Source: Phaeosaccion multiseriatum
Lineage: Eukaryota; Protista; Ochrophyta, other classes
DNA length: 64,000 bases
Assembly: GCA_965112735.1 (NCBI GenBank)
Contig: OZ218960.1
Span: 248,001-312,000, forward strand
Direction of reading: 5' to 3'
Part shown: piece by piece, positions 18,757-64,000 of the stretch
Position numbering within the stretch: position 1 is the first letter of the stretch
How the letters are laid out: every line of letters starts with the position of its first letter
The notes under the pieces: generated by a model
What the model saw: the letters and a program-made list of their open reading frames with translations, nothing else
What the model was told of the DNA's origin: nothing
The model's database searches: none
Program-made: the position numbers and the translations under genes

Positions 18757-18824
18757 GCCCCACAGTCGGGTATCACATGTCCTCTCCTCCCGACTGCTTT
18801 CATGCATTCACCGATACGGCTACG

Positions 18825-18862
<38 letters not shown>

Positions 18863-25770: not shown

Positions 25771-25801
<31 letters not shown>

Positions 25802-28290
25802 GCAGCCGCAGCAGCCGCAGAAGGTGGGTCATGGCGCAGGCCTTCTCCCGAGGGTGTAGATAGTGAAAAGCCTGCAGCCCATGCGCGCTCGGGCTGGCCG
25901 ACGGAGCGGCAGGATGAAGAGAGCGGGGGGGGCGAATGGTTTGAGTTTGACACTTTCGTGCCGCTGGAGACCCTCACGAGTGCTCACACTCGGCCGTCCT
26001 CTTCCATGAGGATCGACCCGGACACGCTGGAGGCTGGACTAGGGGAGGGGGCTTGTCCGGCGGCGGCTGTATCACCAACTGGGACCTCTACCGAGGTTGG
26101 TACTGTTGCGGGCCTTGCTACGGCTGCTGCTGCTGTTCCTGCTGCTGCTCCGGCGGGTGCTCCAGCTCCGACTGCTGCTACCGTCGAGACTGGCGCTGGC
26201 GCTTCGACGGCTGCTTCGTCTACCCCGGGCAAGGGAAGCATCCTTATCATTGATGACACCAGGTACGTATTCGCTGGCTCCAGCTACGACTCCGTATGTG
26301 TTGACCCTCCCCTCCACAGGCACCAGTCTGCACACCTCATTACTCACTCACTCACTTACTCACTCACTCACTGAGTCAGTCAGTCAGTCACTCACTCACT
26401 CACTCACTCACTCACTCACTCACTCACTCACTCACTCACTCACTCACTCACTCACTCACTCACTCACTCACTCACTCACTCACTCACTCACTCACTCACT
26501 CACTCACTCACTCACTGAGTCAGTCAGTCAGTCAGTCAGTCAGTCAGTCAGTCAGTCAGTCACTCGTTCACCGTCATTGACGTAGTGATTCATACCCTTA
26601 TTGACGTATGCTGTACACAGGAATGTGCTGGCGATGTACGGGCGGGCCGCGAGGAAGGAGAACTACGAGGTGTTCACTGCCATCAATGGTGAGTGTGTGT
26701 ATGAGTATGTGTATGTGCGCGCGTGTATGTGTGCGTGCGTGCGTGTGTGTAGTGTGTGTGTGTGTGTTTGCGGGTGTGCGTGTTGAGAGGAACCCAATGT
26801 GGAAGGAGTCTGAAGTTCCTCATCCGCCTCAGAACGAAAAAAACAGCGCTTCGCCTCGCCTCGCCCTTGCTTAGGTCTTGCTCAATCCTTGCTTAGCTGG
26901 TTGTTGCAGGCGCGCTGGCGGAACAGATCGTGGGTGTGTAAACAGTTTGGACTCTAAAGCACAGTCGACATGGCCCCGACATCCGATGTCGCACAACTGA
27001 AGACCAGGGTCGATCCGACTCAGAAGAGCTTCACCCGTACCCCCCCCTCATTGATTTGATTTTCTACAGGAGAGGAAGGGCTGGAGCTGATGACGAAGCG
27101 CATATTCACTCTGGTCATGTGTGACCTTCAAATGCCCATTATGGACGGCACAGAGTGCATTTCTCGCCTCAGAGAGTTCGAAAGGACGAACCGAAGGGCA
27201 GAGAGGCAAATTGTTCTCTCCATGTCCACTTCCTCCGACGGATCCGCCATGGAGGCTTGCGTGCGCTGCGGAAGTAAGTCATCACAGTCCCTCCTTCCCT
27301 GCTACAGCTTCGGTTTGAGTTTTAAAAAAGAGTTAGTTCCCTGGACAAGCATCGTCGAGCCGGAAGACCAATACCGATGTGCGATATCGCTATGGTTGGA
27401 GCTCAGTGAACGCTTTCTCTCCTTTGCTCACTGCCTCTCACCCACCTCATGCCTTCACTGACTACTCGTCTTCCTTCTCGTCCTCCTCTTGTGCTGGATG
27501 GAATGGCAGTGGACGGTTTTGCGCCGAAACCTCTTAAGCTCCGCATTTTCGCAAAGGTGAGGAGGAGAAGGAGGAGGAGGAGGAGGAGGAATGTATAGTC
27601 CTCTTGCGGAGAGGATAGAGGACGAGACGCATGCCTTGCCCTAAGCTCTCTGCGACCATCTAACGACACCACCCTTGCTGTTTCTGTTGGCTTACTTTCC
27701 AACCGCTCCAGCTGCTGGATGCGTACTCCTTCTCTATGGAGGACGGAGGCTCAACAGTCACCCCGGGAAGCTCTCGGCTTCAACTGCCTTCAGCAGAAGG
27801 AGACAGCACCACCAGCCGCAGTAGGAGCGGCGGTCTTGTGAGTCCACAGGCGGCGGAGGCGAAACAACCCACGGAGCTCCCGAGCCTTGTGATCCGAGGC
27901 CAACGGGGGTTAGCCTCGTCGCAGAAGCAGGAGCCTGTGGTGATTCAGCAGCAGTCGCCACAGAAGCAGGAGCCTGTGGTGATTCAGCAGCAGTCGCCAC
28001 AGAAGCAGGAGCCTGTGGTGATTCAGCAGCAGTCGCCACAGAAGCAGGGGCCGTTCGTGATGTCGCCACCACCGGCGATTAGGGCTACTGTGAGTCCGAG
28101 TGCGGTGCGGTGGGTGCAGCTGTCGACGAACCGCAACGACGAGAGCAACGACGGAGCCGCGAGCCGTGCAGAGGAGGAGAGAGACAGACGGGGTAGTGTG
28201 GGGCAATACGGCGAGTGGGAGTTGATGTATTGCGGGGAGGTGGAGGCGCGGGGGCTGGCAGACGGTGGGACCTTTGTGCTGTGGAAGTGA
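20756..28290 (+). CDS. Hybrid histidine kinase: ETR1-type ethylene-binding 3-TM domain, PAS, HisKA, HATPase_c, receiver
   Basis: Thirteen GT-AG exons: 20756-20873, 21013-21129, 21385-21701, 21912-21996, 22510-22708, 22951-23035, 23645-23734, 24242-24408, 24586-26262, 26621-26688, 27070-27273, 27510-27556 and 27712-28290. Motifs: DLVIAVSYYIIP, FIVLCGTVHL, GRSFFDIVHPDD, IAHDLKTPL, NLCTNACKYT, DTGIGV, LFKPF, GTGLGL, ILIIDD, CDLQMPIMDG, DGFAPKP. Confidence 0.93.
23201..23256. repeat. (GGAGA)n pentanucleotide repeat
   Basis: Visible directly in a kinase intron. Confidence 0.95.
26342..26563. repeat. (TCAC)n/(TCAG)n compound intronic microsatellite
   Basis: Visible directly in the intron that splits the receiver domain. 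Confidence 0.95.
27919..28048 (+). repeat. Coding 39-bp tandem repeat (SPQKQEPVVIQQQ, about 3 copies) in the kinase C-terminal tail
   Basis: cagaagcaggagcctgtggtgattcagcagcagtcgcca repeated three times. Confidence 0.92.
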
Positions 28291-34633: not shown

Positions 34634-36942
34634 GTCTTTCTGTCCCTGTCTCTGCCTCTGTCTCTGTCTGTCTCTCTCTCCCTCTCTCTCTGCCCTGTCC
34701 CCACTCCCTCAGTGCTTCACGCGGGCCAAAGGCAGCTTGGAGCAAGCAGCGGTGCAGCAGATGCTCGGGAGGGTGGTGGCAGAGCACTTGTTTGGGGCAG
34801 CAGCTGAAGGAGATTCGCCTGTCAGTGCGAGTGAGAGAGGCGCGAATAAAACTCCTTCCGGTGCCATCTGCCGACGCTCACGCTTTCTGACCGCACTGAA
34901 CGCCTTGCAGCGCATCAAGGGGAAGATGATGGGCGCTCCGGGCCAAGGGCAGCAGCAGCACCACCACCACCACCAACAGCAGCAGCAGCAGCAGCAGCAG
35001 GTACGCGCGAAGAGGTTAATGGAGCGGGAAGGTCGTACCTGTCCCGTCGGGGCAAGGAAGGAAGGAAGGAAGGAAGGAAGCTGGCTGCTGCATGCTGTAC
35101 AAGTAGGCTGAGCTGCGGAGGGCCAAGGGCTTGACCCGATGGCAGCAAATGACAAGAGTAAGGTCAAAGGCAGGCACTTGAAGAAGCCTCTCGTGCCCCA
35201 CCTCATTCCCTAACACACACCATGCCCCACGCACTCGTTTTGACTCGCTTCGCACACGCGTGCTCTTCCCTCCCGCTCCACTCCTCCACTCCTCCACTCC
35301 TCCCCTCCTCGCTCCCTGCCGCTCTTGATGCTCTTGGGGGTCCTGTCCTCACCCCTCCCACCCCCAAACACGCCGAGGTGCAGGTACAGGGTTCACGTCA
35401 TCCCGTGCTTCAAGACGATATCCTCACGGCTATGCTCCTGGCCGCCCCGGAGGAAGTTCGAAGGCGTTTGGGCGGAGGAGTGTTACAAGAGGGGCTGGGC
35501 TTGTACCTGCAGCTGCGGGCAGAGGTGGGGGGGGCAGTGACACCAGGTTGTCGAGGTAGTAGAGAGGTGGTTGCCGTTCTGGAGACGGTGGTGCCGTTGC
35601 TTGAAGCCAGTGGGAATGTAAGTGCAATGCAGAGGGAGGGAGGGAGGGAGGGAGGGTTCCATTGGATTTGATTGAATTGGTTGCTTGCTCCACGTCGATC
35701 GGTACCCCAACTTACGTGAACGCTTCCTTGCTTCAATGGCATGCCCAATCAGTGTGTTTCATTCCATCCTTGCCCTTCTCCACAAGACGTGTCGTGTGTA
35801 CCCTCCCTCTCCCTCTTGACGAAACGTCCGGTTGCTTTTCATGAGCTTGCCCCCTCTCTCTTTTGACTGAATGCCCGCTTCACTTGCTTCCGCTCGCTTC
35901 CTCTCGGCTCTTGAACGAATCAGACGGGGGCTCTGGAGCCTCTGCTCGTCCCTCTGTGGGAAGACACACGCCGCCATTGCAACACGCTGGAGAGGCGTCT
36001 TCTCTCACCGCAGCGGCAATCATATAGGCAGCCGCAGCAGCAGTCGTATGGGCAGCAGCAGCCCGAGTCGGTTGGTCATGGCGAGGAGAGTGAGCAAGAG
36101 TGCGCCCTGGACAGTCTCTTTCAGCTTCTTCGAGTGTGGGATGCAGTGCTGGAGCCCAAGGCCCAGGGACAAGGGCAAGGGCAGGGGCAAAAGGTGCCAC
36201 ACACTACCGTCGGAGTTGTCGGAGAAGGAAGAGGAGGAGGAGGAGGAGGAGGAGGAGGAGGAGGAGGAGGAGGAGGAGGAGGAGGAGGAGGAGGAGGAGG
36301 AGGAGGAGGAGGAGGAGGAGGAGGAGGAGGAGGAGGAGGAGGAGGAGGAGGAGGAGGAGGAGGAGGAGGAGGAGGAGGAGGAGGAGGAGGAGGAGGAGGA
36401 GGAGGAGGAGGAGGAGGAGGAGGAGGAGGAGGAGGAGGAGGAGGAGGAGGAGGAGGAGGAGGAGGAGGAGGAGGAGGAGGAGGAGGAGGAGGAGGAGGAG
36501 GAGGAGGAGGAGGAGGAGGAGGAGGAGGAGGAGGAGGAGGAGGAGGAGGAGGAGGAGGAGGAGGAGGAGGAGGAGGAGGAGGAGGAGGAGGAGGAGGAGG
36601 AGGAGGAGGAGGAGGAGGAGGAGGAGGAGGAGGAGGAGGAGGAGGAGGAGGAGGAGGAGGCGGCGGCAAGGGGAAGGGCAGTGCCCATCGGCAAGGGTTA
36701 CAGAACAGCGAAGGGGACAAGAAAAAGGCATCGGGCGGCTCCGTCCCCCCGGGGAGCCTGCTCTCCCCTCTGGAGGTGAAGCAGCTCTCTGCGTGCCTCT
36801 TCCCGACGGTTCTGTCCTTCCGCCGCCTCACGAGGGTCGGGGTGTCCATCGCACTGAAATTGCCAGGTACGTGTGCCGTCCCGAGTGAGCCAAGGAGTGG
36901 TGGAGAGGGATCGAGGCATTGAGGCGTTAGAGAGCAAGCAGG

Positions 36943-47459: not shown

Positions 47460-50261
47460 TCAAATATACCCGGCTGCCACATCCACAGCCATTTCCATAT
47501 ACCCGCACACGTACGGCGCCACGTAGCAGGCGATGAACGGCTTGTTGGCCCGGCCACACACATTGCACCTCCACAGGGGCACCCTCACCATGACACTATC
47601 CCGGCTCTCCACGGCCTCTCGTAGAGCCTCCTTCTCCTCGTCCACATGTCCGTAGGCCTCTGCAGCCGCCGCTCGCCACTGCCCCAGCCACTCCAGCGCC
47701 GCCGTGAGGGATAGTCCCAGCTTGGAAACCAACCCCTCGGCGATGGGCGTCAGAAGCGCCGCTGCCTCCTCCTCACTCGATAGGCACAGCCTTCGGACGG
47801 TGGCCTCGTCGTTGAGACCCCGCTCGTCGAGCACGTCCTGCAGACTCGCCATGACCCTTCTGTCCAGACCGGCGAAGAGAGTACCTTCGTCCTTCTCCTC
47901 CTCCTCCTCCTCCTCCTCCTCCTCCTCCTCCTGCACCTCCTGCTGCTGCTTCGTCCTTGCTGCTACTGTTGCCGCGACTGACACAGGCGGGGCTGGAGGT
48001 GCCATCGTCTGTCCCGCTGTGGCGAAGCGAGTGGATGGTGCCGGTGCGTCTGCTGCTCTCTCTGAAGACCTAACAGCGATGCTCTCCTGCACCCTCCTGA
48101 CGGCCTTGTGCAAGTCCTGTGCAAGTACCTTGCCGTCACTCTCGCCCCCCTCTCCATCCCGCCCCTCGGCGGCCATTGTCCTCTCGGCCATGCACTGAAA
48201 TACCCGCTTGGCCAACTCGTCGCAGGTCCTGCCGTTGCCGAAGCGCGGGGCGCGAACCACTTCTTCCATCAAGGAGGACAGTGCACTCTCCGCCTCCTCT
48301 GACAGCTCCAGGCTTCCAAAGTGCCGACTGCGAAGCTTCATCCGCAGTAGGGTGCAGGCGTCCTCCACGCCAAAGTCCTCAAACAGCAGCGTGTTAGGGA
48401 AGCGAGAGGCCAATCCGGCATTCGCCTCCATGAGTCCGTCGATATCCTCCTCGTACCCGGCGAGTATGACCACCATCTTCCCCTTGAAACGCTCGTCGGT
48501 GAGGCTCTCCACAAGCTGGTCCACGACCTCCTGCAGGGGCGTGCGTGTGTGTGCGTGTGTGTGTGTGTGCGTGTGTGTGTGTGGGTGTATGTGGTGGGGA
48601 GAGCAAGCAATGTTCGAGTGGTGAATCCCTCCAGGGCGGTAGCTCGTGTACCCCAGTGCTGTACTAGCCTGCATCATCCCGCTGCTGCTGCCACTCAGGG
48701 TACCCCCTCCGTGCGAGGGGTTGAGTCCATACGCCTCGTCGATGAAGAGAACCTTGCCCAGCGCGCTCTCCATCACCTCCTTGGTCTTTAGCGCTGCCTG
48801 CCCTAGGTAACCTTTTGTACATGGCGAGCAGGGGGGCAGAGGGATGGCAGTGGATGGGTACGGTAGAGGGGCAGAGGGACAGAGGGGAAACCAACCGCGC
48901 ATATCGAACAGAAGAAGGACGAGAGAGGGTGGATGGTAGTGGATGGCGAACAAAGCACGTGAGGACGAAGGACCTAGATATCTATCTCAGCAGCAGGTAG
49001 TGATCGTGGAGCCACAGCAACAGGAATGTGGAGAAGCAGCAGCGAAAGGAACGTTTACAGCCAGGAGAGGCATATGGGTAGAAGGGCGCAGATGATGATG
49101 ATGGTCAGACAGATCACCGCCCACCGCATGCCGCCTCTTACCCGTGATGAGGCTGGAGGGGCTGACTTGCACCACATCGTCGCTGGAGAGCACCCCCAGC
49201 CGCTTGAACATCTTGCCCATTCGACGAGCCACAGTGGTCTTGCCTGAGCCATGAGTCGAAGCAGGAGGGAGGGGGGCAGGAGGAGGAGGAGGAGGAGGAG
49301 GAGGAGGGGAAGGACGAGGAGTGAAGTGCAGCCCGTGATACGAACAGGGTTGAATGACGAGGCTCCTGCGTGTTATGTGCGGGCGTGCACTTTTGTTTTC
49401 GAAGGAACCTTTGCCCTCATCCGTACCTGTACCGGGGGACCCGACAAACTTGAAATTCAAGCTCATCATCTGAAGGAGGGTTGAGGTCAGAGGTCAGAAG
49501 AAGCAGGCCCAGGGGTGGGGGGCAACAGAGGGTACCAGAAAGACTCGGTCAGGCAGGTATAAAGCATAGGAGCAAACTGGCAGGAGGGAGGGAGGGAGGG
49601 AGGGAGGGACAGGAGGGAGGGAGGGAGGGAGGGAGGGAGGGAGGGAGGGAGGGAGGGACAGGAGGGAGGGAGGGAGGGAGGGAGGGAGGGAAGGGAGGGA
49701 GGGAGGGAGGGAGGGAGGGAGGGAGGGAGGGAGGGACAGGAGGGAGGGAGGGAGGGAGGGAGGGAGGGAGGGAGGGAGGGAGGGACAGGAGGGAGGGAGG
49801 GAGGGAGGGAGGGAGGGAGGGAGGGAGGGAGGGAGGGAGGGAGGGAGGGAGGGAGGGAGGGAGGGAGGGAGGGAGGGAGGGAGGGAGGGAGGGAGGGAGG
49901 GAGGGAGGGAGGGAGGGAGGGAGGGAGGGAGGGAGGGAGGGAGGGAGGGAGAGAGGGAGGGAGGGAGGGAGAGAGGGAGAGAGAGAGAGGGAGGAGAGGG
50001 GAGAGAACGAAGGAGGAAGCCGATACGCACCTCCAGGGGGTTGATGCCGCGCCTCTCTGCGAACTTGAAGGTGCTCTGAAGCTCCGTGAGTGTCTTGATG
50101 ACGGCCGCACAGCCGATCAGCCCTTCGAACAGCTCTGTCTGGAGCCCGCTGCCCCCCCCCGTCTCGTCGCCCCACTCAGGGTCGAAGTCGATGGGAAGCA
50201 GTTCCGCATCGAGTCGCTCGCTGCCGGAGGTGGTGCGGCGCAGTTCCTATTCGCACGTCGC

Positions 50262-50303
<42 letters not shown>

Positions 50304-53221
50304 AGGTTAGGGCAGGAAGGAAGGACGATCGACCGTTGCAGAGCGGCAGGGCAGGACTGACTCTCTCTCTCTCTCTCTCACTCACCTTCCTCCTCATGGC
50401 CTCACTCAAGAGATTGTCCACCTCCCCGCCGTTCCCAAAGTGCTTGGAGGTGTCCCTGCGCTTTGCCAACACGGCTGCCGCAGCGAGACGAGCATCCAGT
50501 GAGGCGGTCAGCCCCTTCTTGGCCTGGGAAGGCGGGAGGGGAGGGGGAGGGAGGATAGGCAGGAGGGGAGCAGGAGGGAGGCAGAGCGACGTGAGTCATG
50601 ATATGCTGGTGCAGAGTGGCCGTCTCGATGGGAAAGCGACCCTTTCGCGACCTTTCTACCGCAGTGGGAGGGCAAAGTGGTGAGCAAGCCAGAAGAAGAG
50701 AGAAGGGTCCGGACTTACCATCTTGGCGGCCAGGATCCTGAGCAGCTGCTCGTCGGTGAAATTATCAAACACAAAGGCGTCGTTCAGGCCAAAGCGCCGG
50801 GCTGGGGAGGAGAGGGAGAGGGAGGGGAGGGGAGGGGAGGGGAGGGGAGGGGAGGGGAGGGGAGGGGAGGGGAGGGGAGGGGAGGGGAGGGGAGGGGAGA
50901 GGAGGGGTCAGTTGGCACAGAGACAGAGATAGAGCCAATGTAGCCCAAATTAAAGCGTGAGTTAGGCATTGAGACGTAGGGCCTGGCACCTAATGGCGAG
51001 TCCACTCATGAGTCCACTCATGCAATACCCCTTGCTGCAAGTCGCCTCTCGTCCTGTCCGCAAGAACGCCGTCACCTACCGAGGCCTGGGTTTGAGTTGC
51101 GAAGCATCTCGTCCATCTCCTCCCTGTACCCGAGCATGCACACGGCACGGTCCTCTCCAGGAACGTTCTGCACTTGCTCCACGATGGTGTCCAGCACGCC
51201 CTTGCGGTACACATCTCCAGTCTTCGAGTACAGCCCGTAGGCCTCGTCTGAAGGGGAGGGGGGGAGGCAAACAGAACCACGCACGCACGCACGCACGCAC
51301 TGTCAGAGCACGTCCAGCAAATGGACGAGAGGAGGAGCAAGCAAGCAATACGAAGGCGCTCAGGCCACCCTCCTTCCACAAGGGGGAGAAAGTAAGGGCC
51401 GACGACGAACGAAGGGATTGAGATGAGACGGCCTCTCTGTCTGTCTGTTTGGCAAAGCAACGCAACGCAATGCAACGCAACGCAACGCAAAGTAATGTAA
51501 CACAAAGTAATGTAACGACGCACCGATGACGAGGACGCACCCCTCCGCCTGTTTGAGGATGGAGCGCGTGGTCGTTTCGGAGGCGCCCATTACGTCCCCC
51601 ACGAAGTCGCTCGCCATCTTCATCACCAACTCTCCCTTGCTGAGGAGCCCAAGCTCGCACAGCACCTCCCCGTACAACTTCGCGAAGGTGGTCTTGCCTG
51701 TGCCTGACAAGGTCAGGGTCAGGGACAGAGACAGACACCGTGACAGCATCGTCCGTGGGTGCATTGTTGGGAGTGTTTGTGTGTGTATTGAGTGTTGTGC
51801 GAGGCGGCCGTACGAGAGGGGCAAAAGGCAGCGCCGAGCGATGCGTGAGAGTGCAGTGGTGGAGAAGGGTAGGAGGGAAGGAGGGCGCGGGAGGCCTTCC
51901 TTGTGGGTAAGGTCTTGCCACGCGGAGCAAGCTCATCCATCTACCCACCATCCATCTACCCACCCTCCTTTCCCCTCACCCACCCGACTCCGTCCATCCT
52001 GCCGTTCCAAGTTCCAAAGTCATTTGGCGATTGGCGACTGGGCATAATTCACCCATCCATTATTGACATACTACACCCACCCCCTTCCTGCCTTTCCACG
52101 TACCCGGATTGCCGAGCATCAAGCGATTGAGCGACACCTGCCTCAGGGGTTTCTGCTCCAGCTCCAGCGCCAAGTTGGTCTTGACAAGCTCCGCGATGCC
52201 CTGCATGGCTTGCTTCACCCCGGCCAGTCCCTCCAGGCTCTGCAGCTTTCGCCAGGCGGGTATGGCATTGAGGTCATCGACCTTGGGCTGCCCCAGGAGG
52301 TCCTCCTTGGTGAGCTCGAACTTGTTGGCGGAGGGGTGTCGAACGAGTCGGTCTGTCTGACGCTGCTGGATGTGGTCGAAGAGGACCCGCACTGCCCGAG
52401 CGTTGCCAAAGCCTCTGGTGCCTGGTGTCGGGAGGCAGAGGAAGAGGTGAGGAGCATGGAGGTCGGTCGTGGTATGGAAGGTGGTGTGGGAGGAGAGAAG
52501 AAAGATTTGATAGAGGCCGTTGCTCATAACACACAGAGCAAGTGGAGAGGGCTGTCCGTCCCTGCCCCGCGCCGCTGTGCGTGACAACAAACAAAGTCGT
52601 GCAGCATCGTTCACCCCTTCCGTGGTGCGTGGTGTGGTGTTTGCCCCCCCCACCGTTTGACTCTTCTCACCCACCTCTGAGCCTTCCCAAGCGTGCGATG
52701 GCGACCTCTGCCCACTTGGGGTCTTCATCGGCGAAGAAGAAGCTGCTCTCCGCCTGCCATCATCACGCACGCACACACGACCCCACTCAGTGAGAGCCAG
52801 GTACATTCATCAAGAGCCAGTGAGAGCACGTGAGAGCAAGTGAGAGCCAGTGAAAGCCGGTGCAGCCAAAGCCAAGCCAAGTGAGGAGGAAGCAATAGTG
52901 GTAGTGTGGCAAGGGAAAAGTAGGTACGCACGCACATCACATCGTACCTGCTTCTTGCTCATGAGGCCGCGTAGGATGCCGAGCAGGATGTCGTCCGAAT
53001 AGTCAGCAAAGACGAGGGTCTGCGGGAAGCGGGAGGGTAGCCCCTCGTTGAACTCGAACAGCTTCTCCATGTCCTTGTGATAGCCGGCCAGCGCCACTAC
53101 CAGCGAGTCGCGCTTGTTCTCCACCTCGCCCAGCAGGAAGTTCAGCACCTGATCAAGTGAAGGTTCCATTGGCTGATTGAAGACAAGCATCTTTCATGGG
53201 CGGGCCGCACTGGAGGAGGAG

Positions 53222-53265
<44 letters not shown>

Positions 53266-54759
53266 GCTTCCCTCCCCCCATTCCAGAGCTCTTGTCCGGC
53301 GTGAGCTGGTACGCCTCGTCGATGAACAGGAGCCCTCCTTCCTCCAACTCTTCCAACTTCTTCTTGAGGAGCCCCACTCCCCCATCCACAAGGTCGGCGC
53401 CTGTCGTCTCCACCACCTTGGGCTGGGGCAGGGGAAGGGCGGGCTTGCTCTTGGACGGCGCGGGGGTTGCAGCTGCGGCAGAAGCGTGCGGGGCGGTGCT
53501 CGACGGGTATCCTCCTTGTTGGTAGCCGAAGGATGCCCCGGTTCCCATGGCAGACTGCAGCTGCGCGTTCACCATCGCCTCTGCTTTCTTCCGCTTGTCC
53601 TCGGCCTCCTTGGCCTTTTCTTCCGCCTCTTTTTGCTCCTTTGTCTGCTGCCTCTTGCGGGCCTCGTCAAATACACCAAGCTCGCCGAGCAGCCGGGCAT
53701 AGAGCCGGGCCACAGTGGTCTTTCCTGGAGAAGTCAATGCGGCGGTGAGGGAGGGACGAAGTGTGTCTCGCTGAGAAAACAACAGCATGCACGGGAGTGA
53801 AACGGCAAGGCGGAAGGGGAAGGCCTGCAGCGGGCAGGCAGGGCAGGCAGGGCAGGCAGGGCAGGCAGGGCAGGCACAAAGGCACCAAGCACACCCCACG
53901 ACCGTTTCGGTCCTTGGGTCTTCCTGCCCATGTGCTTGCCTGTCCCGGGGTTGCCCTCCAGACGGACGTTGTAGGACCGCTCGCTGAGCTTCATGCCTCG
54001 CGCTTTGTCGAGCACCACTCCTTGGGCGATGTTGAGGAATCGCGCCTTGATGCTGAGGGGCAGTTGGTGATACGGCGACAGTTGAAAACATGGTGAGTAA
54101 AGCGCGCCTACCCCCTTCCCTCCCTCTCCCTCTCCCTCTCCCTCCTTACCTGTCCATGCCCGACATGGCAAGAAGCTTGTCCATAGCAGGGCTCTCCACC
54201 CCCTCGGCCGTCTGGAGGCGACTCCGCTGCGCGTCAAGGAGGCTGCTCTCCGGCCCCTCCCCGTCGCCGCCGCCGCCGCCGCCGTCGCCACCTCCACCTC
54301 GACCACCACTTCCAGAACGAGGCCCGCTTGCTACCCCCCCCCTCCCCTCGTCTCCACCTTCTCCTTGGGCGACAAGTGCCTCCCCCAGGCTGCTGCCGAA
54401 TCGCTTAAAGACATCCTCGGCCTCTGTCTTCCACATCATCACCTCCCCGTCGAGCTCCTGCCCTCTGCCCCCGAGTAGCGAGGCAAGCGCAAAGGCGGCG
54501 GCCTGTAGTTGAACGGGAAGGACCAAACAACCACCACACAGACACATACACACATACACACACACACAAAAACACACGCACGCACACACATACACACACA
54601 AGGGATTCGGTACGTTACGCACGGGCGAATAGCATGGATGGGATGGGCCTGCTCCTCGCCTTCGCCTCCACGACCACACGCATGGAACCAATTAAGTAAT
54701 ATATTGCGAATAGCATGGATGGGCCTGCTCCTCGCCTTCGCCTCCACGACCACACGCAT

Positions 54760-54830
<71 letters not shown>

Positions 54831-57800
54831 CAATTCTATTAATGTAAAATGCATAACAGAAATAGAATCAATGTGGTGGGCATATACCACAACCCACCTG
54901 CTCGTGCTGGCCAGCGCTGGTGAGGAGGGAGCAGTACGTCCAGTCCCTCAGCTCACGGGCACCGCGGGACTGAACCGGCGAGAGAGAGGGAGGGGAGAGA
55001 GGGAAGAGCGGGCCCAGACAGAAGGAGGGAGTGGGGAGCCAACCCAGAGAGTGATCCGACCCGATAAGCACGTCAGCGTGGAGAGAGGAAGAAGAGGGGC
55101 CCGGGAACCTTGACCGACGCCAGTTTCAGAAAACCCGAGCCGCACAACAGATCAGCACCCGCCCCTTCCCCTCCTCTTCGCTACTACTAGCTAGCTTACC
55201 CAGCCACGCATCAACTCTTTACTGTAAAAGGCCGTTGCTGCGCTCCGCTCACCTTGAGTCTCTTCGGACGGTTCCCCCCCCCCCCACCGAAGTCATCGGC
55301 TGACGTAAGGCGAGAGAGGAGCGCCTTAGCCTCCGCCCCTCCCCCTCCCCCGCCCATGACCAACGACTCCGTGAGACAAGTTGCGTAGAGAAGGACCGCT
55401 GCCTCTTCCCTCCCCTTCTCCTCTCCTCCTCCTCGTCCTCCGCCTCCTGCTCCCTTCGATGGCGGAGCATCCCCCGCGCCTTCACCTTCCTCCTTCTTGC
55501 CGCCGCCGGATACGGAGTAAGTCATTGAGGCGTCTCTCTTGCGTGCATAGGCGTCGAGAAGCTTGTGGGCGTTGATCCACTCCCCCTTGGGCAGAAGTGT
55601 AACGGCACTCACAAGGGCCATGTCGAGCCCCGCCCACACCGCGCTGCCTCCTCCTCCTCCTCCTCCTCCTCCTCCTCCTGCCTTGGCCTTGGAAGATGAA
55701 GAGGACTTGTTGCCTTTGCCTCTTGCCTCCGGCTGCGAAGAGGGGAGGAGCGGCAAGTGATATGCCTCAGCGTCTGCCTGCTGCCCTTACGCCTCTATCT
55801 ACCCATAAGCCTATCCCTGCCCGCCTCTATCCTGTCTGCCTGTCCACACACCATCCCATGTGTTCTCGTTCCGTCCATATAGGCCTCCCTCTCCTCCCCT
55901 CCCCTCCCGCGGCCCCTGCTGCCCCTGCGGCCCCTGCTGCCCCCCACTCACCTCCGGGAACCAAGAGGCCGCTCCCTCCCCCACCGCCTCACAGAGCACC
56001 TCGGCAAGGGCTTTTCTCTGCTCGAGAGGCACCGCCGCCAGAGTGCTCTCCACCCGTCCGACGTCCGCCGCCGTCACAGCCGCAGACAGGTTGGTGAGAA
56101 GAGACACGAGCACATCATCTTGGAAGGAGGCGGCGTAGGCTTTGCCTTTAAGGGAAGGACATTTCGAGCCTCCCCCTCCCACTCCTTTGCCTCCTTTGGC
56201 TCCTCCTCCTCCTCCTCCTTCTCCTCCTCCTCCTCCTTTGCCTCGAGTACCGCCGTTGCGGTTGGTTTCCTTCGCCTTCTTTCCTTCTGCCGAAGGGCAA
56301 TGGAGGGGTGAAGCAAACGCGTTGAGTACAGAACGGGGAGTGAGGAGTGGATGTACAGCAGGGAGGGAAGCCAGTGGTGATAGTGATACAGTACAGTAGC
56401 GCTATGAACGAGCGAGCTGCCCTAACAACTGACAGCGACCAGAGATTCCACAGCTTCGAAGTACTGTGGGTAGCTATGAGCTGCACGCGTCTCATCTCCA
56501 AATCACCTGGTTGCTTCGTGAGAGCCAATGGCTGGGCTTCTGTCTTTCTCTTCGGTCCTGCCTGCTGCTCCTCTTCCCCCTGCTGCTGCTGCTGCTGTAT
56601 CACCAACTGCTGCTGCTGGCTCTCCGAATCCAAGGCACCATGTGCGGCAACTCCGAGCTCAACCTCGTGCTGCATCCTCTCCTGGGCCTGCTTAGCAAGC
56701 TCCCGACTCTGCTCCAGGGCAGCCTCTCTGATGGTGGAGGACGGAGTGTTTAGGGTGTTTGGGTGGGCATGCAGCGTGTCAGCCACAGAGCCACGGCAGA
56801 GGGTGGCTTCTGCTTTCTGGGTCACTGCCAGTCAAGCCGGTTCGAAGTTTCAGCTCAGAGAGACCGGTACCAGCCATTGGTTGAGCTGCAAGAAGTTGAC
56901 ACTGAAACGCAACCATACCTGGCCCTCTCCAGGCGCTCTTGCTGCATCGCGTCGGCCTCTTCCTGCGCTGCGCTCGCCTTCGCCCTGCCCAGGGAGAGCA
57001 AGGAGAGGGATTAAAGTGTCAAAGAAGGACGTGAAGGAGAGAGAGGAGAGGGAGTAAAGTAACAAGGAGGGAACTCCTTCCCCTCTCTCTGTCTGGCTTC
57101 TACTCCCCTCTCCCCTCTCCCCTCTCACCTCCTCTCCTCCTCGTCGATCTCTGCCTGTCGGATGTCCCTCTCCATCATGAGCATGTCGTTGGCATGCTTG
57201 AGCTCCTTGAGTTGGAAAGCGGCCTTCGCTCGGGCCTCGGTCAGCCTCGCCGCCAGCTCCGTCTGCGCAGACCAGCCCAATCATACAGGCCATCAAGCAA
57301 TGAGAGGTGTCCGTCAGGACCATGCGGTAATAGGTGTCAGGCAACGCGGTTCAGTCAAGCTATGGGAGCGGGTCGTACGAGGACGAAGGACTTCCCTCCC
57401 TTGCCCGTCCTCTTCCCTTCCCCTTCCCTCTCTCTCTCGAAACAGCCGCCGCATGCCCAGCCTGACTGATGAAGAGGGCTCAAAGCATCACAGGCAACAG
57501 CGAAAGAGAGAGAGAAAGGTGCCCCACTTCAGCCCGTACCTTCTCTCTCTGAAGACGGGCAGCCTCGGCCGCTGCGGCTCGCTCCCTTGCTATGCATATC
57601 ACGCACTTGTCGGGCTCCGGCTCGTGGCAAGGCCGCTTGTAACTGTGGGATTGGTGTGATTAGTTTGTTGCATGTTGATGTCTTATCGGTTTGTTGCATG
57701 TTGGTGTCAAAGTGTTGATAGTGACGAATGTTAAGTGCTGCTTTCACTCAGTAAGTGAGCCAAATTGTAATAAGAGGGAGCGGCACAAAGTACACACACA

Positions 57801-60800
57801 CAGCCAAGTGGCGAAGAGAACACGTGGAAGAGTTGGTGGTACGGTTGAGCAAAGGCGGAGAACATGATCATGTGTGGTCACTGAAGCGTCAGAGTATTCA
57901 GACTCTTGAGCTTTTCTGCGGTGGAAGGAGCACCACTTGAGGGCATGGCAGCCAAAGCCATACACTTACAGATGCGCTTGGCCTACATCACGCCACGGTC
58001 ACCCATGGAGGATGCCCTGCAAGCAACCCACTCCACCACTCGCTACTTTCGTACGTACTTACGTATGCAGCTCCTTGGGGCATGTCCACTCCACGACTCT
58101 CTCGCACTTGACTTGCGAATGCTCGATGCGGGGATGGCACTTCAAGGGGCACACGTGACCGCACGCCTCCAACACCGCCCCGCAGTCCAAACTACACCCA
58201 CCATTCGGGGCCAGCTCCAGAAAGGCCTCAGGGGTGCTCAAGGTCATGTGTGTGTTTCCGTGGCGCTCGCAGGCGACGGGTAGACCGGGGTAGATGTGCC
58301 CTCCCTTCTGCAGAAGGGCTTGAAGCTTGCTGAAGAGAGTACGGTCGGCGGGCTTGCGCGACCTGTGGAGAGGGAGGAGGAGGAGAAAGAGAGGAAGATG
58401 GAGAGGGAGGTGGAGAGAGGGGATGGGGAAGGGCGGGTGCGTTTGTGGGTGTGTGTGAGTGTGTGAGTGTGCTTGTGAGCGTGTGGCGTGTGTGTATGTG
58501 CGCGCGTGTTTGCGTGTGTTGTGTTTGTTAGCTTTTGTGTGGCGGCGTATGTTTGTGTGTGTGTGTTTGTGTGTGTGCGTGTGTGTGTGTGTGTGTGCAT
58601 GCAGTCGAAGTGAGCTACATCCCACCCAAGCTCTCTCGGACTCGCATCCCGTGAGTCACCTTACACCCCATACCGTACTTCTATATATTAAACTAGCCTA
58701 CCCGATGAGGTGCTCCAGATCGGCGAATATGATCATTGCCGCCCTAGCTCGAGACATGGTCACGTTCAAACGGTTGGGGTCGCCGACAAAGCCCACCTTA
58801 TCCATAGAGAGGCACAAAGGAGCGCAGCCCGAGGAGTGGAGGAGGGGAGGGAGGATGCAGGTGTAAGGATTCTTCCTCTCTTCCTCTTGTTTCTCTCTTC
58901 TTCTTGTGCTCACCTCCTTGTTGCCGTTACTCCTCACAAGCGAGACGATGACAATGTCGCTCTCTTCCCCCTGGTAGTTGTCCACCGTGGACACGCGAAC
59001 GGCCGACGCTCCTCCCCCCCCTCCTCCTCCACCACCAGTGGTGGTACGGGCGACTCCGTTGGTCTGCTCAAACGCTGCGAGCTCGGCATTGTCCTGCGCG
59101 GAGATGTCAGCTATGAAGTCTGCCGCCGTGATCTTCTCTCGGAGCTCTCGGAGCTGGGCCAGGTAAGGCGTCAGCACCACCATGTCCGTCGTGGCGTAGC
59201 CCTTTTGAACATGGGGGGCGGTTTGGGTTGTTGGGTGGGTGGATGGGTGGGTACGATTGTGCGTGGGTGAGTGAGATTGAGAGGCCGCTCCCTCCCTTAC
59301 TCCCTCACTCCCTCACTCCTTACTCCCTCGTCCCCTCACTCCCTCACCCCCTCACCTGCTGGGCGAGGTAACGCACTGTCGACACCGCCATGTTGACCTG
59401 CGAGGGGAAAGAGGAGAGGCACAGATGGGGCAGCGAAGAGACGCGCCCTCGCGTTACTGGGCAGAATACGTAAGCAGTGCTTGAGTAGGCACTGCGTGAG
59501 TAGGCCCGGCTTGGCAGAGGCCGTGAATCGACACCCCTTCTCGTGTAGTGCTAGACTGAGACGGACGACATTGACGCCGCTCGCGTGGCCGGAAACCCTC
59601 ACTACCTCAGCGCTGACAAACAACCACGGCAACGACGAGGAGGAGCCACACACGCCTCGCACTCAGAGTCCCCACCCCTCACCCTCCAAGGGAAGGCCAA
59701 CAAACTGAAGCCCGCACTAACCTCGAAGTCGTTGATCTTCGAGGCCGATCCTCCGTCCCCTCTCTGGGCTAGGGAGGTGCTGCTCGCCTCGCTATGCCGG
59801 TGATCCACCACCACCACCCGGTCTAACAGCCCCCGAAGGGAGGGGCGCTCCAGCGTCTCGGGGGCATCCAGCAACTGGGGAGGAGGCGGAGAGGGAAAAG
59901 GGGAAGAAGGTTTTAACAACCGAAAGAGGGCAGCGAGGCACTGAGGGTGGGTGCTACCTACAGTACAAGGTGTCTACTTGTAGAGAGGCAGGATGGGGCC
60001 TTCTATCTTGTCTGAGCAAGCAAGCAAGAGTAGTCGGAGAAGTGCTCAGGGGCAGTGCGTTCGAAGCAAGGAACGGGGGGGGGGGGGGGCGATTCAACCA
60101 CCCATCATCGCCTCAATTGAGCTCCTTCCCCTTCCCCTCCTCCTCCCCCTCCCTCCTCCCTCCTCCCTCCTCCGCCTCGCTTGAAGGCCTCCGCACTTTT
60201 GGATACGTCATCTCTCGGACGAGGGCGGAAATGACTGGAGGCATGCGGTGCTGCTTGGAGAGGGTGACGTGCGGGTAGCCCGCGTTGACGAGGCGCTCGA
60301 AGAGAGACACGTTGAGGTTGTAGCCGTTGCTGCTCTCCACCCTCAGGTGGTACTGCTCGGTCTTCGGCCTACCAGGATCATATAGGTAGTGACGTGGTGA
60401 GGCAGTGAGGTAGTGAGGCAGTGAGGCAGTGGGGCAGCGAGGCAGTGAGGTAGTGAGGCAGTGAGGCAGTGGGGCAGTGGGGCAGTGAGGCAGTGAGGCA
60501 GTGAGGCAGCGAGGCAGTGAGGCAGTGAGGCAGCGAGGCAGTGAGGCAGCGAGGCAGTGAGGCAGCGAGGCAGTGAGGCAGTGAGGCAGCGTGGCAGTGA
60601 GGCAGTGAGGCAGTGAGGCAGTGAGGCAGCGTGGCAGTGAGGCAGTGAGGCAGTGAGGCAGCGAGGCAGTGAGGCAGTGAGGCAGTGAGGCAGTGAGGCA
60701 GTGAGGCAGTGAGGCAGTGAGGCAGCGAGGCAGTGAGGCAGTGAGGCAGTGAGGCAGTGAGGCAGTGAGGCAGTGAGGCAGCGAGGCAGTGAGGCAGTGA

Positions 60801-63106
60801 GGCAGTGAGGCAGTGAGGTAGTGAGGCAGTGAGGCAGTGAGGCAGTGAGGCAGCGAGGCAGTGAGGCAGCGAGGCAGCGAGGCAGTGAGGTAGTGAGGCA
60901 GTGGGGCAGTGAGGCAGGGAGGCAGTGAGGCAATGAGGCAGTGAGGCAGTGAGGCAGTGAGGCAGTGAGGCAGTGAGGCAGTGAGGCAGCGAGGCAGTGA
61001 GGCAGTGAGGCAGCGAGGTAGTGAGGCAGTGAGGCAGTGAGGCAGTGAGGTAGTGAGGCAGTGAGGCAGCGAGGCAGCGAGGCAGCGAGGCAGTGAGGCA
61101 GTGAGGCAGTGAGGCAGTGAGGCAGTGAGGCAGTGAGGCAGCGAGGCAGTGAGGCAGTGAGGCAGTGAGGCAGTGAGGCAGCGTGGCAGTGAGGCAGTGA
61201 GGCAGTGAGGCAGCGTGGCAGTAAGGCCCCTCCCTCGCCCCTCACCTCAACTGGAGATGATCGCCGATCATGATGATGTGTTGCGTGCTGGGCGATATCG
61301 ACGAGAGGATGTGTGCCTCCAAGATCTCGCACGCCTGTGTGGGGAAATAGCGACATGGGTGGGTAGAAGACACAGAGTCCATTCATTTGTTGCCTAGTGT
61401 TGAGTGGGTGTAAAGCGGGTCAGAGCCGGAGGGAAGAGGAAGGCACAGAGGCAGAAAGCCGTCCTCCATCCACTGCCATCTCCACCACCATCTACTGCCA
61501 TGGTCTTGCTCTCATGCTTCAATACCAATACATACCTCCTCCACGAGCAAGACGCTGCAGTTGGCTCTGCGGAGGAGATCTGCATTCATGGCAGCTCCTG
61601 TTGTGGTGCAGGCAATCACCCTGGCCAGTGATCGAGGAGTGAGGAGCGAGGAGAAAGCAAGACGGGCCATCAGGGGCAAAGACAGGGCAAAGACAGGGCA
61701 ACAACAGGGCAACAACAGCAGCAACAACGTAGGGGCACTCTACACACCTGACTTTGTCCACCAGTTCGTAGTCCGCCACCTTCTTGAGGTCCTTGAGCTC
61801 GTTGCCGAGGTCGTCGTACTCAGCCATCTGTGATGCGAGATCCAAGCGCTTCTCCCGCCGGATGGACTCGTGCCATGTTTCGAGCAGCTTCACTCGCTCC
61901 TGTATCAGTAAGTCAAGGAATGGGTTGGGGGTTAGTTTCATCGATTGGCTAGTAGGGCATACCCGCAAGACGTGTCCATCTATCTGTCAGCAGGCGGACT
62001 GACTAGACTGACTAGCTAGTGCTCTAGCCGATGGTTCAAGGGTTACAAAGCGCAAGGGTACAGTATGCATATCTCATCAGAGCCACTTGTCACTTTACCA
62101 CTTGCCTCCTTGGACTTGGCCCACAGATTGTCTGCTGACACCAGGTAGGTGGGGGGGGACAGGGGGAGCAGGGGTGGCAGAGGCGGGACGGTGAGGAGGG
62201 AAGGAGGGTCTGAACATGAGCCGAAGGGATGGGGAGGGCCAATCAGGAGGGAGGCGCTGTGGTGTAGGCCCACGAAAAGTGAGCAAGCAGGAGAGCCAAA
62301 GCAACAAGGAGCCAAAGGAGCCAAAGAAGCCAAAGAAGCCAAAGAAGCCAAAGAAGCCGGTTCCGTACCGCTCGCCTCCGACGCCTTGAGGCGAGTGGGC
62401 AAGGAGGAAGTCTTCTTGCCGCTTCGCCAGTCACGTATCACGCTGTCGATGCCGGCCTTCTTGCCATTCCTGCCCACTAGCGTCGCTCCATGCTCTTCCC
62501 GGATCGCGAGGGAGAGCTGGTTGTGGTACTCATCCTCCCCTTGCTGACGCAACCAGTCGAGGACGATGGAATAGGACGGCGTCATGTTGGGCCTCAGGAG
62601 CCTCTGCCCCCGCTCTATCATGCCCTCCAGGTCCTCCATCTGGCTCAATATCACGCCGTGACGTCTGCGCTGACAGGCGCTGAAGGACCCCCCGCCGCCG
62701 TTCCTCGCGAGCCCTGCTTCCTCGCTCTTCTGCCTGATGGTGTACTTCTCCATATCAGCGTCTCTACTGCCCCTACCCAGGCGAAGCATATCCGTGATGC
62801 CTGGTGTAGATGGTAGTGGATGGCAGTGGATGGCAGTGGATGGCAGTCGATGACAGTGAACGGCAGTGGATGGCAGTGAATGGCAGTGAACGGCAGTGGA
62901 TGGCAATGGATGGCAGTGGGTGGCAGTTGATGGCAGTGGACGGTATGGACGGACAGTAGCGCGGGAGGTGAGCGGGGAGCGAGGTGCGCGCTGTCTCCCG
63001 TATGCTTGCCAACCAGCCCGAACGCCTGTCTGTCTGTCTGTCTGTCTGTCTGCCTGCCTGTGTGTCTGTCTCTGTCTGTCTGTCTGTCTGTCTGTCTGCC
63101 TGTCTA

Positions 63107-63143
<37 letters not shown>

Positions 63144-64000
63144 ACGTCTGTCTGCCTGCCTACTGCCTGCCTTCCCGTATGCCTGTCTGCCTGCCTCCCT
63201 GTCTGCCTGCCTGCCTGTCTGTCTGTTTATCTGCCCACATGCCTGCCAACCGCTCCTCCCCAGTGCTCCTCTCCAGTGCACATTCCTGATGTGCTTGAGT
63301 AGTCGGCCTGCCCATATGCCTACGCCTTACTGACTTACTGACCTTTCGCCTCCAAGTCCTTCATAAAGGCATCCAGCGCGTGGTTCGTGTAACAGACGGT
63401 CAGGATCTTGGCCTCGGTGTTCTGCACAAGGGCGGGGGGGGTACCACAGAGCAAAGTGGCGAAGCAAGAGGGGGGGATAGCAAGAGAGTAAGAGCCCGCC
63501 CACGAATGGTATGGCAGGGTGAGTGTGTGTGTGTCTACCTGCTCTCTCTGCCTCTGCAGATCCCCTATTTCCTTCGCTTGCCACCACCAAAGTCCTCCCT
63601 AGAGGCATACGTGCAGGCTTGAGCATCTGCTTACCTCAAGGATGGCCCGCGCCAGGAGGGCTCCGATGAACGTCTTTCCTGCTCATGTTGGGCATCCAGC
63701 AAGTGCATATCCGAAAAGAACAAGTTGAGGGTGTGACAGAGTCGCAGAGAGGGGGCCGTGAGGCTTGCTGGAGAACGGGCAAGGCAGGGCAGGGCGGAGA
63801 TCTCCTCCCTAAATTGCCGACTCTGTTGAAGCGAGTAATGCACACACGCACATACACACACACATACACACACGTACGCACTCACTCACTCACGCACGCA
63901 CGCACGCACACCTCCTCACCGGTTCCAGGGGGGCCCTGAATTAGCGCGATGGCTTGCTGCAGAGCCCCCTCCACCGCGGCCCTCTGACTGGGGTCCAGCA
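47460..64000 (-). CDS. ZNFX1-like UPF1-family SF1 helicase with Cys/His zinc region, fused to three CbbX/SpoVK-type AAA+ domains; 5' end outside window
   Basis: Helicase motifs: [84 protein letters not shown]. Zn region: [23 protein letters not shown]...[15 protein letters not shown]1: [36 protein letters not shown]2: [32 protein letters not shown]3: [29 protein letters not shown]. Stop at 47462-47460. Confidence 0.9.
49583..49980. repeat. (GGAG)n tetranucleotide array in a helicase-AAA intron
   Basis: Visible directly, with periodic GACA interruptions. Confidence 0.95.
50821..50898. repeat. (GGAGG)n pentanucleotide repeat
   Basis: Visible directly. Confidence 0.95.
54625..54829. repeat. 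Direct duplication of about 55-60 bp followed by (TA)n
   Basis: gcgaatagcatggatggg...cctgctcctcgccttcgcctccacgaccacacgcatg occurs at 54625-54684 and 54706-54760; (AT)n spans 54763-54829. Confidence 0.9.
60397..61222. repeat. (GAGGCAGT)n octamer tandem array in a helicase intron
   Basis: About 100 units. It fills the intron 61245-60369 that splits GDHLQL/RP. Confidence 0.95.
62810..63225. repeat. Compound intronic repeats (GGCAGTGGAT)n and (CTGT/CTGC)n
   Basis: Decamer units at 62810-62940 and tetramer units at 63026-63225. Confidence 0.9.

Follow-up and report, generated by a model that had tools for sequence, protein, structure and literature searches.

This study concerns a gene on the minus strand of a 64,000-nucleotide stretch of the Phaeosaccion multiseriatum genome (GenBank assembly GCA_965112735.1, contig OZ218960.1, positions 248,001 to 312,000 of the forward strand), which is called the window below and in which positions are counted from its first letter. 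Between 47460 and 64000 the minus strand carries the parts of a ZNFX1-type helicase, an NFX1-type zinc-finger module, a long linker, three tandem AAA+ modules and a Cys-containing tail. With a probability of about 0.7, we read these parts as one spliced gene whose product would couple the engagement of RNA by the helicase to the remodelling of a protein or ribonucleoprotein (RNP) partner by the AAA+ cassette. The features of the gene are listed in the direction of transcription, with positions in a family hidden Markov model (HMM), described below, where they apply.

63343..63998, minus strand: helicase domain 1A, in exons 63998-63920, 63678-63635 and 63421-63343 (HMM 135-203; tblastn with the homologues P0019 and P0085)
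61706..62800, minus strand: insert between helicase motifs I and II, in exons 62800-62369, 62131-62106 (uncertain) and 61899-61748 or 61899-61706 (HMM 207-398)
58702..61620, minus strand: helicase core with motifs II-VI, in seven exons, 61620-61536 (ending in LLVEE), 61334-61246 (ACEILEAH...GDHLQL), 60368-60197, 59874-59722, 59397-59356, 59201-58914 and 58796-58702 (AAA_12; PDB matches to ZNFX1; HMM 383-679)
57540..58362, minus strand: NFX1-type zinc-finger module, in exons 58362-58063 and 57642-57540 (HMM 681-819)
54150..57262, minus strand: poorly conserved linker of ~500 residues (coding-potential profile; splice-site chain)
57262-57129, 56984-56919 and 56727-56507, minus strand: charged helical exons of the linker
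56286-56251, 56145-55952, 55687-55253 and 54969-54898, minus strand: helical or low-complexity exons of the linker, of which the first and the last are small and uncertain
54502-54150, minus strand: exon that enters the N-terminal helix of AAA+ module 1
52104..54052, minus strand: AAA+ module 1, in exons 54052-53940, 53724-53264, 53148-52948, 52753-52675 and 52421-52104 (AAA_lid_6 2.4e-7; HMM 1163-1487)
50031..51703, minus strand: AAA+ module 2, whose P-loop starts in exon 52421-52104, continued in exons 51703-51524, 51247-51080, 50801-50719, 50523-50386 and 50246-50031 (HMM 1484-1749)
48150..49469, minus strand: AAA+ module 3, in exons 49469-49427, 49243-49142, 48811-48669 and the first ~125 codons of 48530-47463 (PDB, AAA_lid_6 and NCBIfam matches)
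47463..48150, minus strand: C-terminal tail in the last exon, with an acidic disordered stretch, a four-helix domain and a beta-hairpin (family conservation; AlphaFold2 (AF2) model)
47460-47462, minus strand: stop codon TGA at the end of the last exon
47364, minus strand: TGTAA, a candidate poly(A) signal 96 nt past the stop, of a type that is chlorophyte and may not be the host's

Every motif that a preliminary description of this region had named was recovered on the minus strand, in the order that it gave, by a three-frame motif scan, by reading the splice junctions and by the family HMM. The single continuous open reading frame (ORF) of 16.5 kb that it had proposed was not recovered. The longest stop-free piece on the minus strand of 47460-64000 has 508 codons, so a gene longer than 16.5 kb must be spliced, and our model for this intron-rich window, whose GC content is ~0.6, has ~37 exons from 63998 to 47463, with ~2,320 codons and ~7.0 kb of coding sequence. 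The chained frames, joined by script for a check of frame and motifs, stay open to the TGA. The helicase begins at the edge of the window, and the 5' end of the gene and the N-terminus of its product lie beyond 64000. Similarity searches of the window protein were run exon by exon. The family HMM was built from eleven full-length relatives that cover the helicase. Its matches among all minus-strand ORF pieces, ~29 exons in total, form a strictly colinear chain from HMM position 135 (at 63998) to 2174 (at 47490), with E values down to 7e-70, which excludes chance; HMM positions ~820-1130, which correspond to the linker, found no match in these pieces. When full-length fusion proteins were compared with the window by tblastn, eleven covered the helicase too and were colinear. 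Pfam searches of stop-to-stop pieces matched only AAA_12 and AAA_lid_6, because the exons are short, and plus-strand ORFs across the region had no Pfam match.

All four P-loops are split by introns and become complete only after splicing, as was read from the junctions (a slash marks the junction). The helicase P-loop, GPPGT-G-KT, lies at 63935-63920 and is interrupted at 63920/63678 by a phase-1 intron. The P-loop of module 1, GNPGT-G-KT, starts at 53955 and is interrupted at 53940/53724 by a GC-AG intron (CAG/GCAAGC), that of module 2, GNP-G-TGKT, at 52104/51703, and that of module 3, GSPGT-G-KT, which starts at 49442, at 49427/49243. In the helicase and in modules 1 and 3, a phase-1 intron falls in the same Gly codon of GTG/KT, and the intron of module 2 lies 6 nt upstream. 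The coding sequence of the P-loop, ...ACA G/GT AAG..., itself comes close to a perfect donor site. The introns may therefore have been gained repeatedly at a proto-splice site, or have been inherited when the module was triplicated. Modules 1 and 3 also seem to have in common an intron just past the Walker B region.

In the final model the P-loop junctions were forced and the path through the linker was set by splice-site strength, using matrices trained on 28 junctions, all of them outside the linker. It replaced a first ab initio model based on codon statistics, which gave a continuous frame of 39 exons but read through the P-loop introns and crossed the linker by way of tiny poly-Glu exons and weak GC donors. 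There are 20 minus-strand GT sites of at least 8.5 bits in the region, 19 of which are donors of the final model, and only six such sites on the plus strand. The twentieth, at 61748, is strong and unused in the model, and is probably the true end of exon 6, as opposed to 61706. The model is uncertain at exon 5 (62131-62106), at the 3' end of exon 6 and at the GC donor of exon 36 (48669). The introns are packed with micro- and minisatellites (~63160-62900, 61240-60400, 54840-54770, 54610-54540 and 49990-49600), which include (CAGA)n-like repeats that read as 'RQTD', an in-frame LTASLPHC repeat, an (AT)n of ~35 units, (TG)n and a CTCCCT-like 'SLPP' array, and a direct repeat of ~45 nt, catgcgtgtggtcgtggaggcgaaggcgaggagcaggccc, is present in two copies at ~54760 and ~54690. 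TGTAA is the poly(A) signal of Chlamydomonas-type (chlorophyte) algae. Its other minus-strand occurrences in the gene, at 57970, 58665, 62047 and 49059, all lie in predicted introns. The one at 57970 is ~90 nt past a stop that is read if the intron after exon 58362-58063 is retained, and a short helicase-only isoform is possible.

Assignment of the helicase to the ZNFX1 type, as first proposed, was upheld by searches against the PDB, in which human ZNFX1 (9q9z) was the sole match of exon 8 (residues 1094-1124), the best match of exon 9 (4e-5, with UPF1 at 0.07 or above) and the only match by phmmer of the Cys/His exon 58362-58063 (residues 1328-1407, E 2e-8). Exons 12-13 match both UPF1 and ZNFX1, and the homologue P0019 matches ZNFX1 9q9z at 4e-85 and UPF1 at 3e-33. 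Motif II reads LLVEE/A, split at 61536/61334, and is followed by GDHLQLRP; AAA_12 was matched at 58701-59312 (3.5e-22), and by sequence the ATPase motifs of the helicase are intact. The insert at 61706..62800 corresponds to the 1B/1C-type insert of UPF1 and ZNFX1 helicases. The zinc-finger exons were matched by tblastn with all fusion homologues (E 1e-10 to 1e-21), and Cys/His motifs are confined to 58362-58063 and 57642-57540. ZNFX1 itself consists of an ARM domain, the helicase, twelve zinc fingers and a C-terminal E3 ligase module that is made up of a Miz-like domain and an RZ finger (PMC13710534; bioRxiv 10.1101/2025.10.14.682297). The human and the window protein share the superfamily 1B (SF1B) UPF1-like core, motif II with EEA, the EAxEVLEAH and GDHxQLR motifs and a first NFX1 finger right after the helicase. 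They differ in what follows, which is the twelve-finger stalk and the Miz-like/RZ E3 module in human ZNFX1, and ~1-2 fingers and three AAA+ modules here. Because of this small number of fingers and of the AAA+ cassette that forms its C-terminal half, we place the predicted window protein in the ZNFX1 family of helicases but do not regard it as an orthologue of ZNFX1.

The cassette belongs to the SpoVK/CbbX/EccA clade of AAA+ proteins, as its Walker A (GxPGTGKT), Walker B (hhhhDEAY), Arg-finger region (GxxSR[FI]) and AAA_lid_6 lid show. Module 1 carries GNPGTGKT, DEAY at 53320, SRF at 53034 and FGN at 52410 (FGNAR), and has a low-complexity insert of ~100 residues after the P-loop helix. Module 2 carries GNPG/TGKT, LVI(D)EAY at 51248, GLARRF (RRF at 50799) and FGN at 50439 (FGNGG), and its exon 51703-51524 matches SpoVK (2e-12) and CbbX (2e-10) in NCBIfam. 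Module 3, with GSPGTGKT, DEAY at 48740, SRF at 48407, FGN at 48242 (FGNGR) and the pore loop TG-YLGQ, matches EccA1 (1e-7) and CbbX (3e-5) in the PDB, AAA_lid_6, and SpoVK in NCBIfam (8e-14). In CbbX, the pore loop has a Tyr, in ...GQYIG..., in every subunit. Here the Tyr is found only in module 3 (TGYVGQ in the family consensus), modules 1 and 2 being without an aromatic residue at this place both in the window and in the family consensus, and the sensor-2 Arg is gone from module 2 in the window and family-wide. The three motors, which had been called intact, do have complete Walker A and Walker B motifs and Arg-finger regions, but modules 1 and 2 lack the pore-loop aromatic residue and module 2 lacks the sensor-2 Arg.

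The NCBIfam scores of the cassette rank SpoVK above CbbX and CbbX above EccA. Summed over its three modules, the Mesostigma viride homologue P0001 stays below the equivalog cut-offs of the three families, with 411 (cut-off 423), 367 (459) and 352 (467), and single exons of the window score far below these sums. The fold of the cassette was modelled on residues 1013-2152 of P0001, with an alignment of 76 sequences, and not on the window protein itself. This model has a predicted local distance difference test score (pLDDT) of 88 and a predicted template-modelling score (pTM) of 0.72. Its top structural match is CbbX 3syk_A (Z 24.3, root-mean-square deviation 4.5, 285/290 residues), other AAA+ proteins reaching at most 19.3, and Foldseek places it with CbbX 3syl_B (template-modelling (TM) score 0.72, 32% identity). 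The NCBIfam matches, the sequence search of the PDB and the P0001 model thus agree with the CbbX-type assignment made at first; the label 'CbbX-type' is fair, and 'SpoVK/CbbX/EccA clade' is more exact. With CbbX (3syk/3syl) the cassette shares the fold including the N-terminal helical extension (seen in the P0001 model), the four diagnostic features given above and FxNxR. It differs from CbbX, SpoVK and EccA in having three separately diverged modules per chain, in scores under the equivalog cut-offs, in the restricted pore-loop Tyr and the lost sensor-2 Arg, and in showing no connection here with Rubisco, sporulation or type VII secretion. The parallel with RNF213 that had been drawn is a loose one, since the fold searches do not support an RNF213-, dynein- or midasin-like arc, and neither such an arc nor RNF213 appears in the structural match lists of the P0001 cassette model. 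The likeness, no more than an analogy, is that RNF213 too is large and has several AAA+ modules next to an enzymatic module of another kind. It has, however, six dynein-like modules in one chain, a RING and an RZ finger, in contrast to three CbbX-type modules and no RING/RZ pattern here. The RZ finger is what RNF213 has in common with ZNFX1 (bioRxiv 10.1101/2025.10.14.682297).

Comparison of 110 fusion proteins revealed that DEAY is kept in each module together with a signature specific to that module, which is SR[VF] with GNAR in module 1, RRF with GN[AG]G or SNGE and no sensor-2 Arg in module 2, and SRF in module 3. In module 3 the sensor-2 pattern is xNGR in the 19 proteins where it was recognised; in 77 of the 110 it was not. 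The signatures of the window (SRF/FGNAR, RRF/FGNGG and SRF/FGNGR) follow the pattern of the family. Since the signatures are family-wide, the triplication is ancient and the three positions are not equivalent, and it is most likely that the cassette works as a fixed asymmetric unit.

The tail is kept end to end over its last ~135 residues in hundreds of relatives. Its beta-hairpin carries WRCNVCGR...IACYV with three invariant Cys, the invariant residues being C104, C107, G108 and C117 (C-x2-C-x9-C) in the motif WRCxVCGR...P[YF]IxC[YF]VxP[FY]IV, in which no His is conserved. The AF2 model of 47463-47876 shows four helices and the beta-hairpin with a pLDDT of 92.8, and a fold search with it found no structural relative (best Z 4.8, best TM 0.42). 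In an RZ finger, the zinc ligands are C-x3-H ... C-x2-C, accompanied by a catalytic Cys and a His base (bioRxiv 10.1101/2025.10.14.682297). By motif and by fold, we rejected the tail as an RZ finger or known zinc ribbon, as the RZ Cys/His pattern, a fold match and a beta-sandwich are all missing. What had been described as a Cys-rich tail does contain Cys and is conserved, but it amounts to a three-Cys beta-hairpin. A second type of tail, GVCxxG[FY]xW...GGYRCxGGSH, with a different Cys/His spacing, replaces the WRCxVCGR hairpin in the last ~40 residues of proteins from fungi, Sphagnum and Diacronema (for example P0085, P0187, P0217, P0242 and P0263).

A search with the last exon (47463-48530, 356 residues) against 1.84 billion representative proteins gave 5,778 matches, many of which have 2,000-2,500 residues and three matched stretches, and many of which match the whole tail. 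A word-index search with P0019 yielded 4,994 proteins (E <= 1e-10), and among the 120 with the best scores almost every one has both the helicase and the AAA+ domains; in P0019, P0027 and P0040, Pfam identifies AAA_11, AAA_12 and three copies of AAA/AAA_lid_6. The similarly built fungal proteins that the preliminary description had mentioned do exist, as the fusion is present in dozens of Agaricomycetes and Ascomycetes including Schizophyllum, Mycena, Suillus, Pisolithus, Aspergillus and Colletotrichum. Members were also found in volvocine algae (Chlamydomonas reinhardtii XP_001692158.1, C. incerta, C. schloesseri, Edaphochlamys, Gonium, Astrephomene and Tetrabaena), elsewhere in the green lineage (Sanguina, Botryococcus and Sphagnum), in chrysophytes (Chlorochromonas danica EP00981_P011845, Epipyxis and Mallomonas), in the cryptophyte Hemiselmis, the haptophyte Diacronema, the jakobid Andalucia godoyi and the diplonemid Lacrimia, and in Picozoa. 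Some have database labels such as 'NFX1-type zinc finger-containing protein 1' in Tetrabaena socialis and 'Protein cfxQ homolog' in Andalucia godoyi. The fusion is encoded by a single ORF on assembled transcripts of Lacrimia (TRINITY) and Hemiselmis and on GEMP01000289 ('type:complete'), so it is no artefact of gene prediction. No prokaryotic member was seen among the homologues inspected, and a bacterial origin of two metagenomic homologues (IMG 'AAA+ superfamily predicted ATPase') was rejected on account of their eukaryote-type neighbours (arrestin, flavohaemoglobin and YVC1). Mycena, Roridomyces, Hysterangium, Pisolithus and Edaphochlamys carry several paralogues in a genome, some of them together on one contig. 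The broad spread of the family over eukaryotes agrees with an ancient family no less than with a patchily distributed defence gene.

Overall, the closest relatives are only ~40-45% identical to the window protein, the best being that of Mesostigma viride. This protein, P0001 (EP00899_P014092, 2152 residues), is 64-80% identical to the window in the core AAA+ exons, including those of module 1, and has an N-terminal major sperm protein (MSP) domain and ~870 residues without a Pfam match. In a tree of the last exon it is the sister of the window (branch value 98), which stands apart from the volvocine and Botryococcus fusions. Together with the Didymoeca protein P0005, in which the cassette stands alone, P0001 indicates that cassette and tail also occur behind other N-termini or by themselves. 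The fusion proteins, for example Chlamydomonas XP_001692158.1 and Schizophyllum commune KAL1691007.1, share with the window gene the domain order, a linker of ~450-550 residues, the module signatures and the tail, and differ from it in that identity is ~40%, that the window gene has many more introns and that its cassette groups with P0001. Judged from its predicted protein, the window gene is a new member of a widespread eukaryotic family of helicase and triple-AAA+ proteins that is already in the databases, and not a new kind of protein. Literature searches that combined ZNFX1 with CbbX, with AAA+ and fungi, or with Chlamydomonas found no functional study of this fusion family.

Whether the helicase and the AAA+ cassette are joined in Phaeosaccion turns on the linker. 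In tblastn searches with ~130 homologues, including algal ones, the linker showed no similarity to the linkers of homologues, only the continuation of the zinc fingers being matched, so that the linker exons are placed by sequence statistics only; among the relatives themselves, the linker is also unconserved. Its charged helical exons (57642-56507) have an A/E/K/R/Q/L/M fraction of 0.65-0.90, a statement about composition only. In principle, the region could hold two adjacent genes on the same strand, a helicase gene that ends near 55211 (...FTVKS stop) and a triple-AAA+ gene that starts from ATG ATG TGG at ~54440, an arrangement that would have arisen by a later splitting of the ancestral fusion or by chance. 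Together with the missing similarity of the linker, the observations that favour two genes weigh against our joint reading. The nearest relative of the cassette, P0001, has its MSP domain in place of a helicase, and stand-alone triple-AAA+ proteins with short N-termini exist (P0005 of Didymoeca, a complete ORF, and P0003, on contigs of up to 188 kb). The ~750 nt of 55253-54502 have no coding signal and contain repeats of the types (AT)n and (TG)n. In-frame Met codons come next, directly before the conserved Trp of the N-terminal helix of module 1, so that the interval is possibly intergenic. A further point against the joint reading, which concerns the mechanism, is that a pore-loop Tyr in one of three modules speaks against classical six-fold threading.

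However, several features speak against two genes. The donor at 55253 is strong, lies 40 nt before the putative stop and is in phase with the acceptor at 54502. It is one of seven strong donors in the linker (57540, 57129, 56919, 56507, 55952, 55253 and 54898), none of which was in the training set, and the best path through the linker uses all seven, giving one open frame of 1,614 nt from the zinc-finger exon to the exon of the N-terminal helix of module 1. There is no TGTAA on the minus strand between 57900 and 49100, which includes the whole interval, and coding potential is spread through the linker, whose length of ~500 residues matches that of the fusion homologues. Domain order, orientation and linker length are as in the fusion proteins of at least six eukaryotic lineages, and the cassette lies inside a clade dominated by fusions. 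From this evidence we consider two separate genes improbable, and one multi-exon minus-strand gene that contains both the helicase and the AAA+ parts likely.

If the joint reading is right, the function of the protein may be sketched by homology and analogy. The helicase would bind single-stranded RNA and translocate in the 5' to 3' direction, as UPF1 and ZNFX1 do. The AAA+ cassette, sitting where ZNFX1 has its E3 ligase module, would use ATP to remodel a partner, either a protein or an RNP, in the way that CbbX, SpoVK and EccA act on specific clients, and it may dimerise into a closed ring of six modules. The client of CbbX is Rubisco. Proteins of the CbbX clade act on single dedicated clients, for instance SpoVK on MurG (PMC11513918). 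Coupling of RNA engagement to remodelling may serve defence, RNA silencing or RNP quality control.

It has been suggested in the preliminary description that the protein is an antiviral machine in which the helicase detects foreign or aberrant RNA and a dimeric ring of six AAA+ modules extracts or remodels proteins. The resemblance of the helicase is specifically to ZNFX1, an interferon-induced protein that was recently shown to be an antiviral helicase and RNA-ubiquitinating E3 ligase (PMC13710534; bioRxiv 10.1101/2025.10.14.682297), and the several paralogues per genome in Mycena, Roridomyces, Hysterangium, Pisolithus and Edaphochlamys would suit such a role. This possibility is also supported by the match of the helicase to MkoA of the bacterial Mokosh defence system (PADLOC profile, 1e-15 on one helicase exon of the window and 1.4e-65 on P0019), although the match reflects generic UPF1-clade similarity. 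Some bacterial Type III-A CoCoNuT loci pair CnuH, a UPF1-like helicase, with a SpoVK-family AAA+ protein (PMC11090510). MkoA and CnuH have in common with the window protein a UPF1-clade helicase, but Mokosh and CoCoNuT are made up of separate operon genes with nucleases and McrB GTPases, and no such partners and no nuclease domain are seen here. The tail has no RZ/E3 module, and a broad and ancient family with module-specific conservation fits a conserved cellular role equally well. A function in defence appears unlikely to us. Alternatively, the protein may act as a cofactor in silencing, by small RNAs or heterochromatin, or in the quality control of messenger RNPs or ribosomes, with the cassette recycling or disassembling an RNP. 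Other ZNFX1-family helicases, namely Hrr1 of S. pombe, SAD-3 of Neurospora and ZNFX-1 of C. elegans, have roles of this kind. The ZNFX1-family type of the helicase agrees with such a role, as do the presence of the family in fungi and algae that have RNA interference, its ancient spread across eukaryotic supergroups and the dedicated, single-client nature of chaperones and activators of the CbbX clade such as SpoVK. The window and two loci of homologues that were inspected show no link to Argonaute, Dicer or RNA-dependent RNA polymerase genes, and the proposal is a tentative one, but defence is no more likely than a role in silencing or RNP quality control.

Elsewhere the window contains the following features, together with a pure GAG/GGA/AGG tract of ~600 nt within 36100-36900, whose frames give poly-Glu, poly-Gly or poly-Arg and whose opposite strand gives poly-Pro.

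24194-26371, plus strand: HATPase_c domain of the histidine-kinase type (1.2e-15)
18823-20334, minus strand: Rad17 P-loop domain (2.3e-8)
6057-6902, plus strand: DEAD-box Helicase_C exon that resembles UAP56/Sub2 (4.7e-16)

In its most far-reaching form, the interpretation would be that the family is an ancient, eukaryote-wide RNA-triggered effector, in which the helicase senses foreign or aberrant RNA and a ring formed by two asymmetric cassettes extracts or remodels proteins. We hold this to be rather unlikely. If it were true, fungi, algae and protists would possess an as yet unstudied arm of innate immunity or of genome defence, and the family would represent a third pairing of the helicase, AAA+ and RZ-E3 modules known from ZNFX1 and RNF213. 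In practical terms, what this genome gains is a corrected model of the gene, with ~37 exons. For the family, our results point to a large sister family of ZNFX1 in which three CbbX-type AAA+ motors replace the ligase, which has thousands of entries in the databases and which is present in tractable organisms such as Chlamydomonas, Schizophyllum and Aspergillus.

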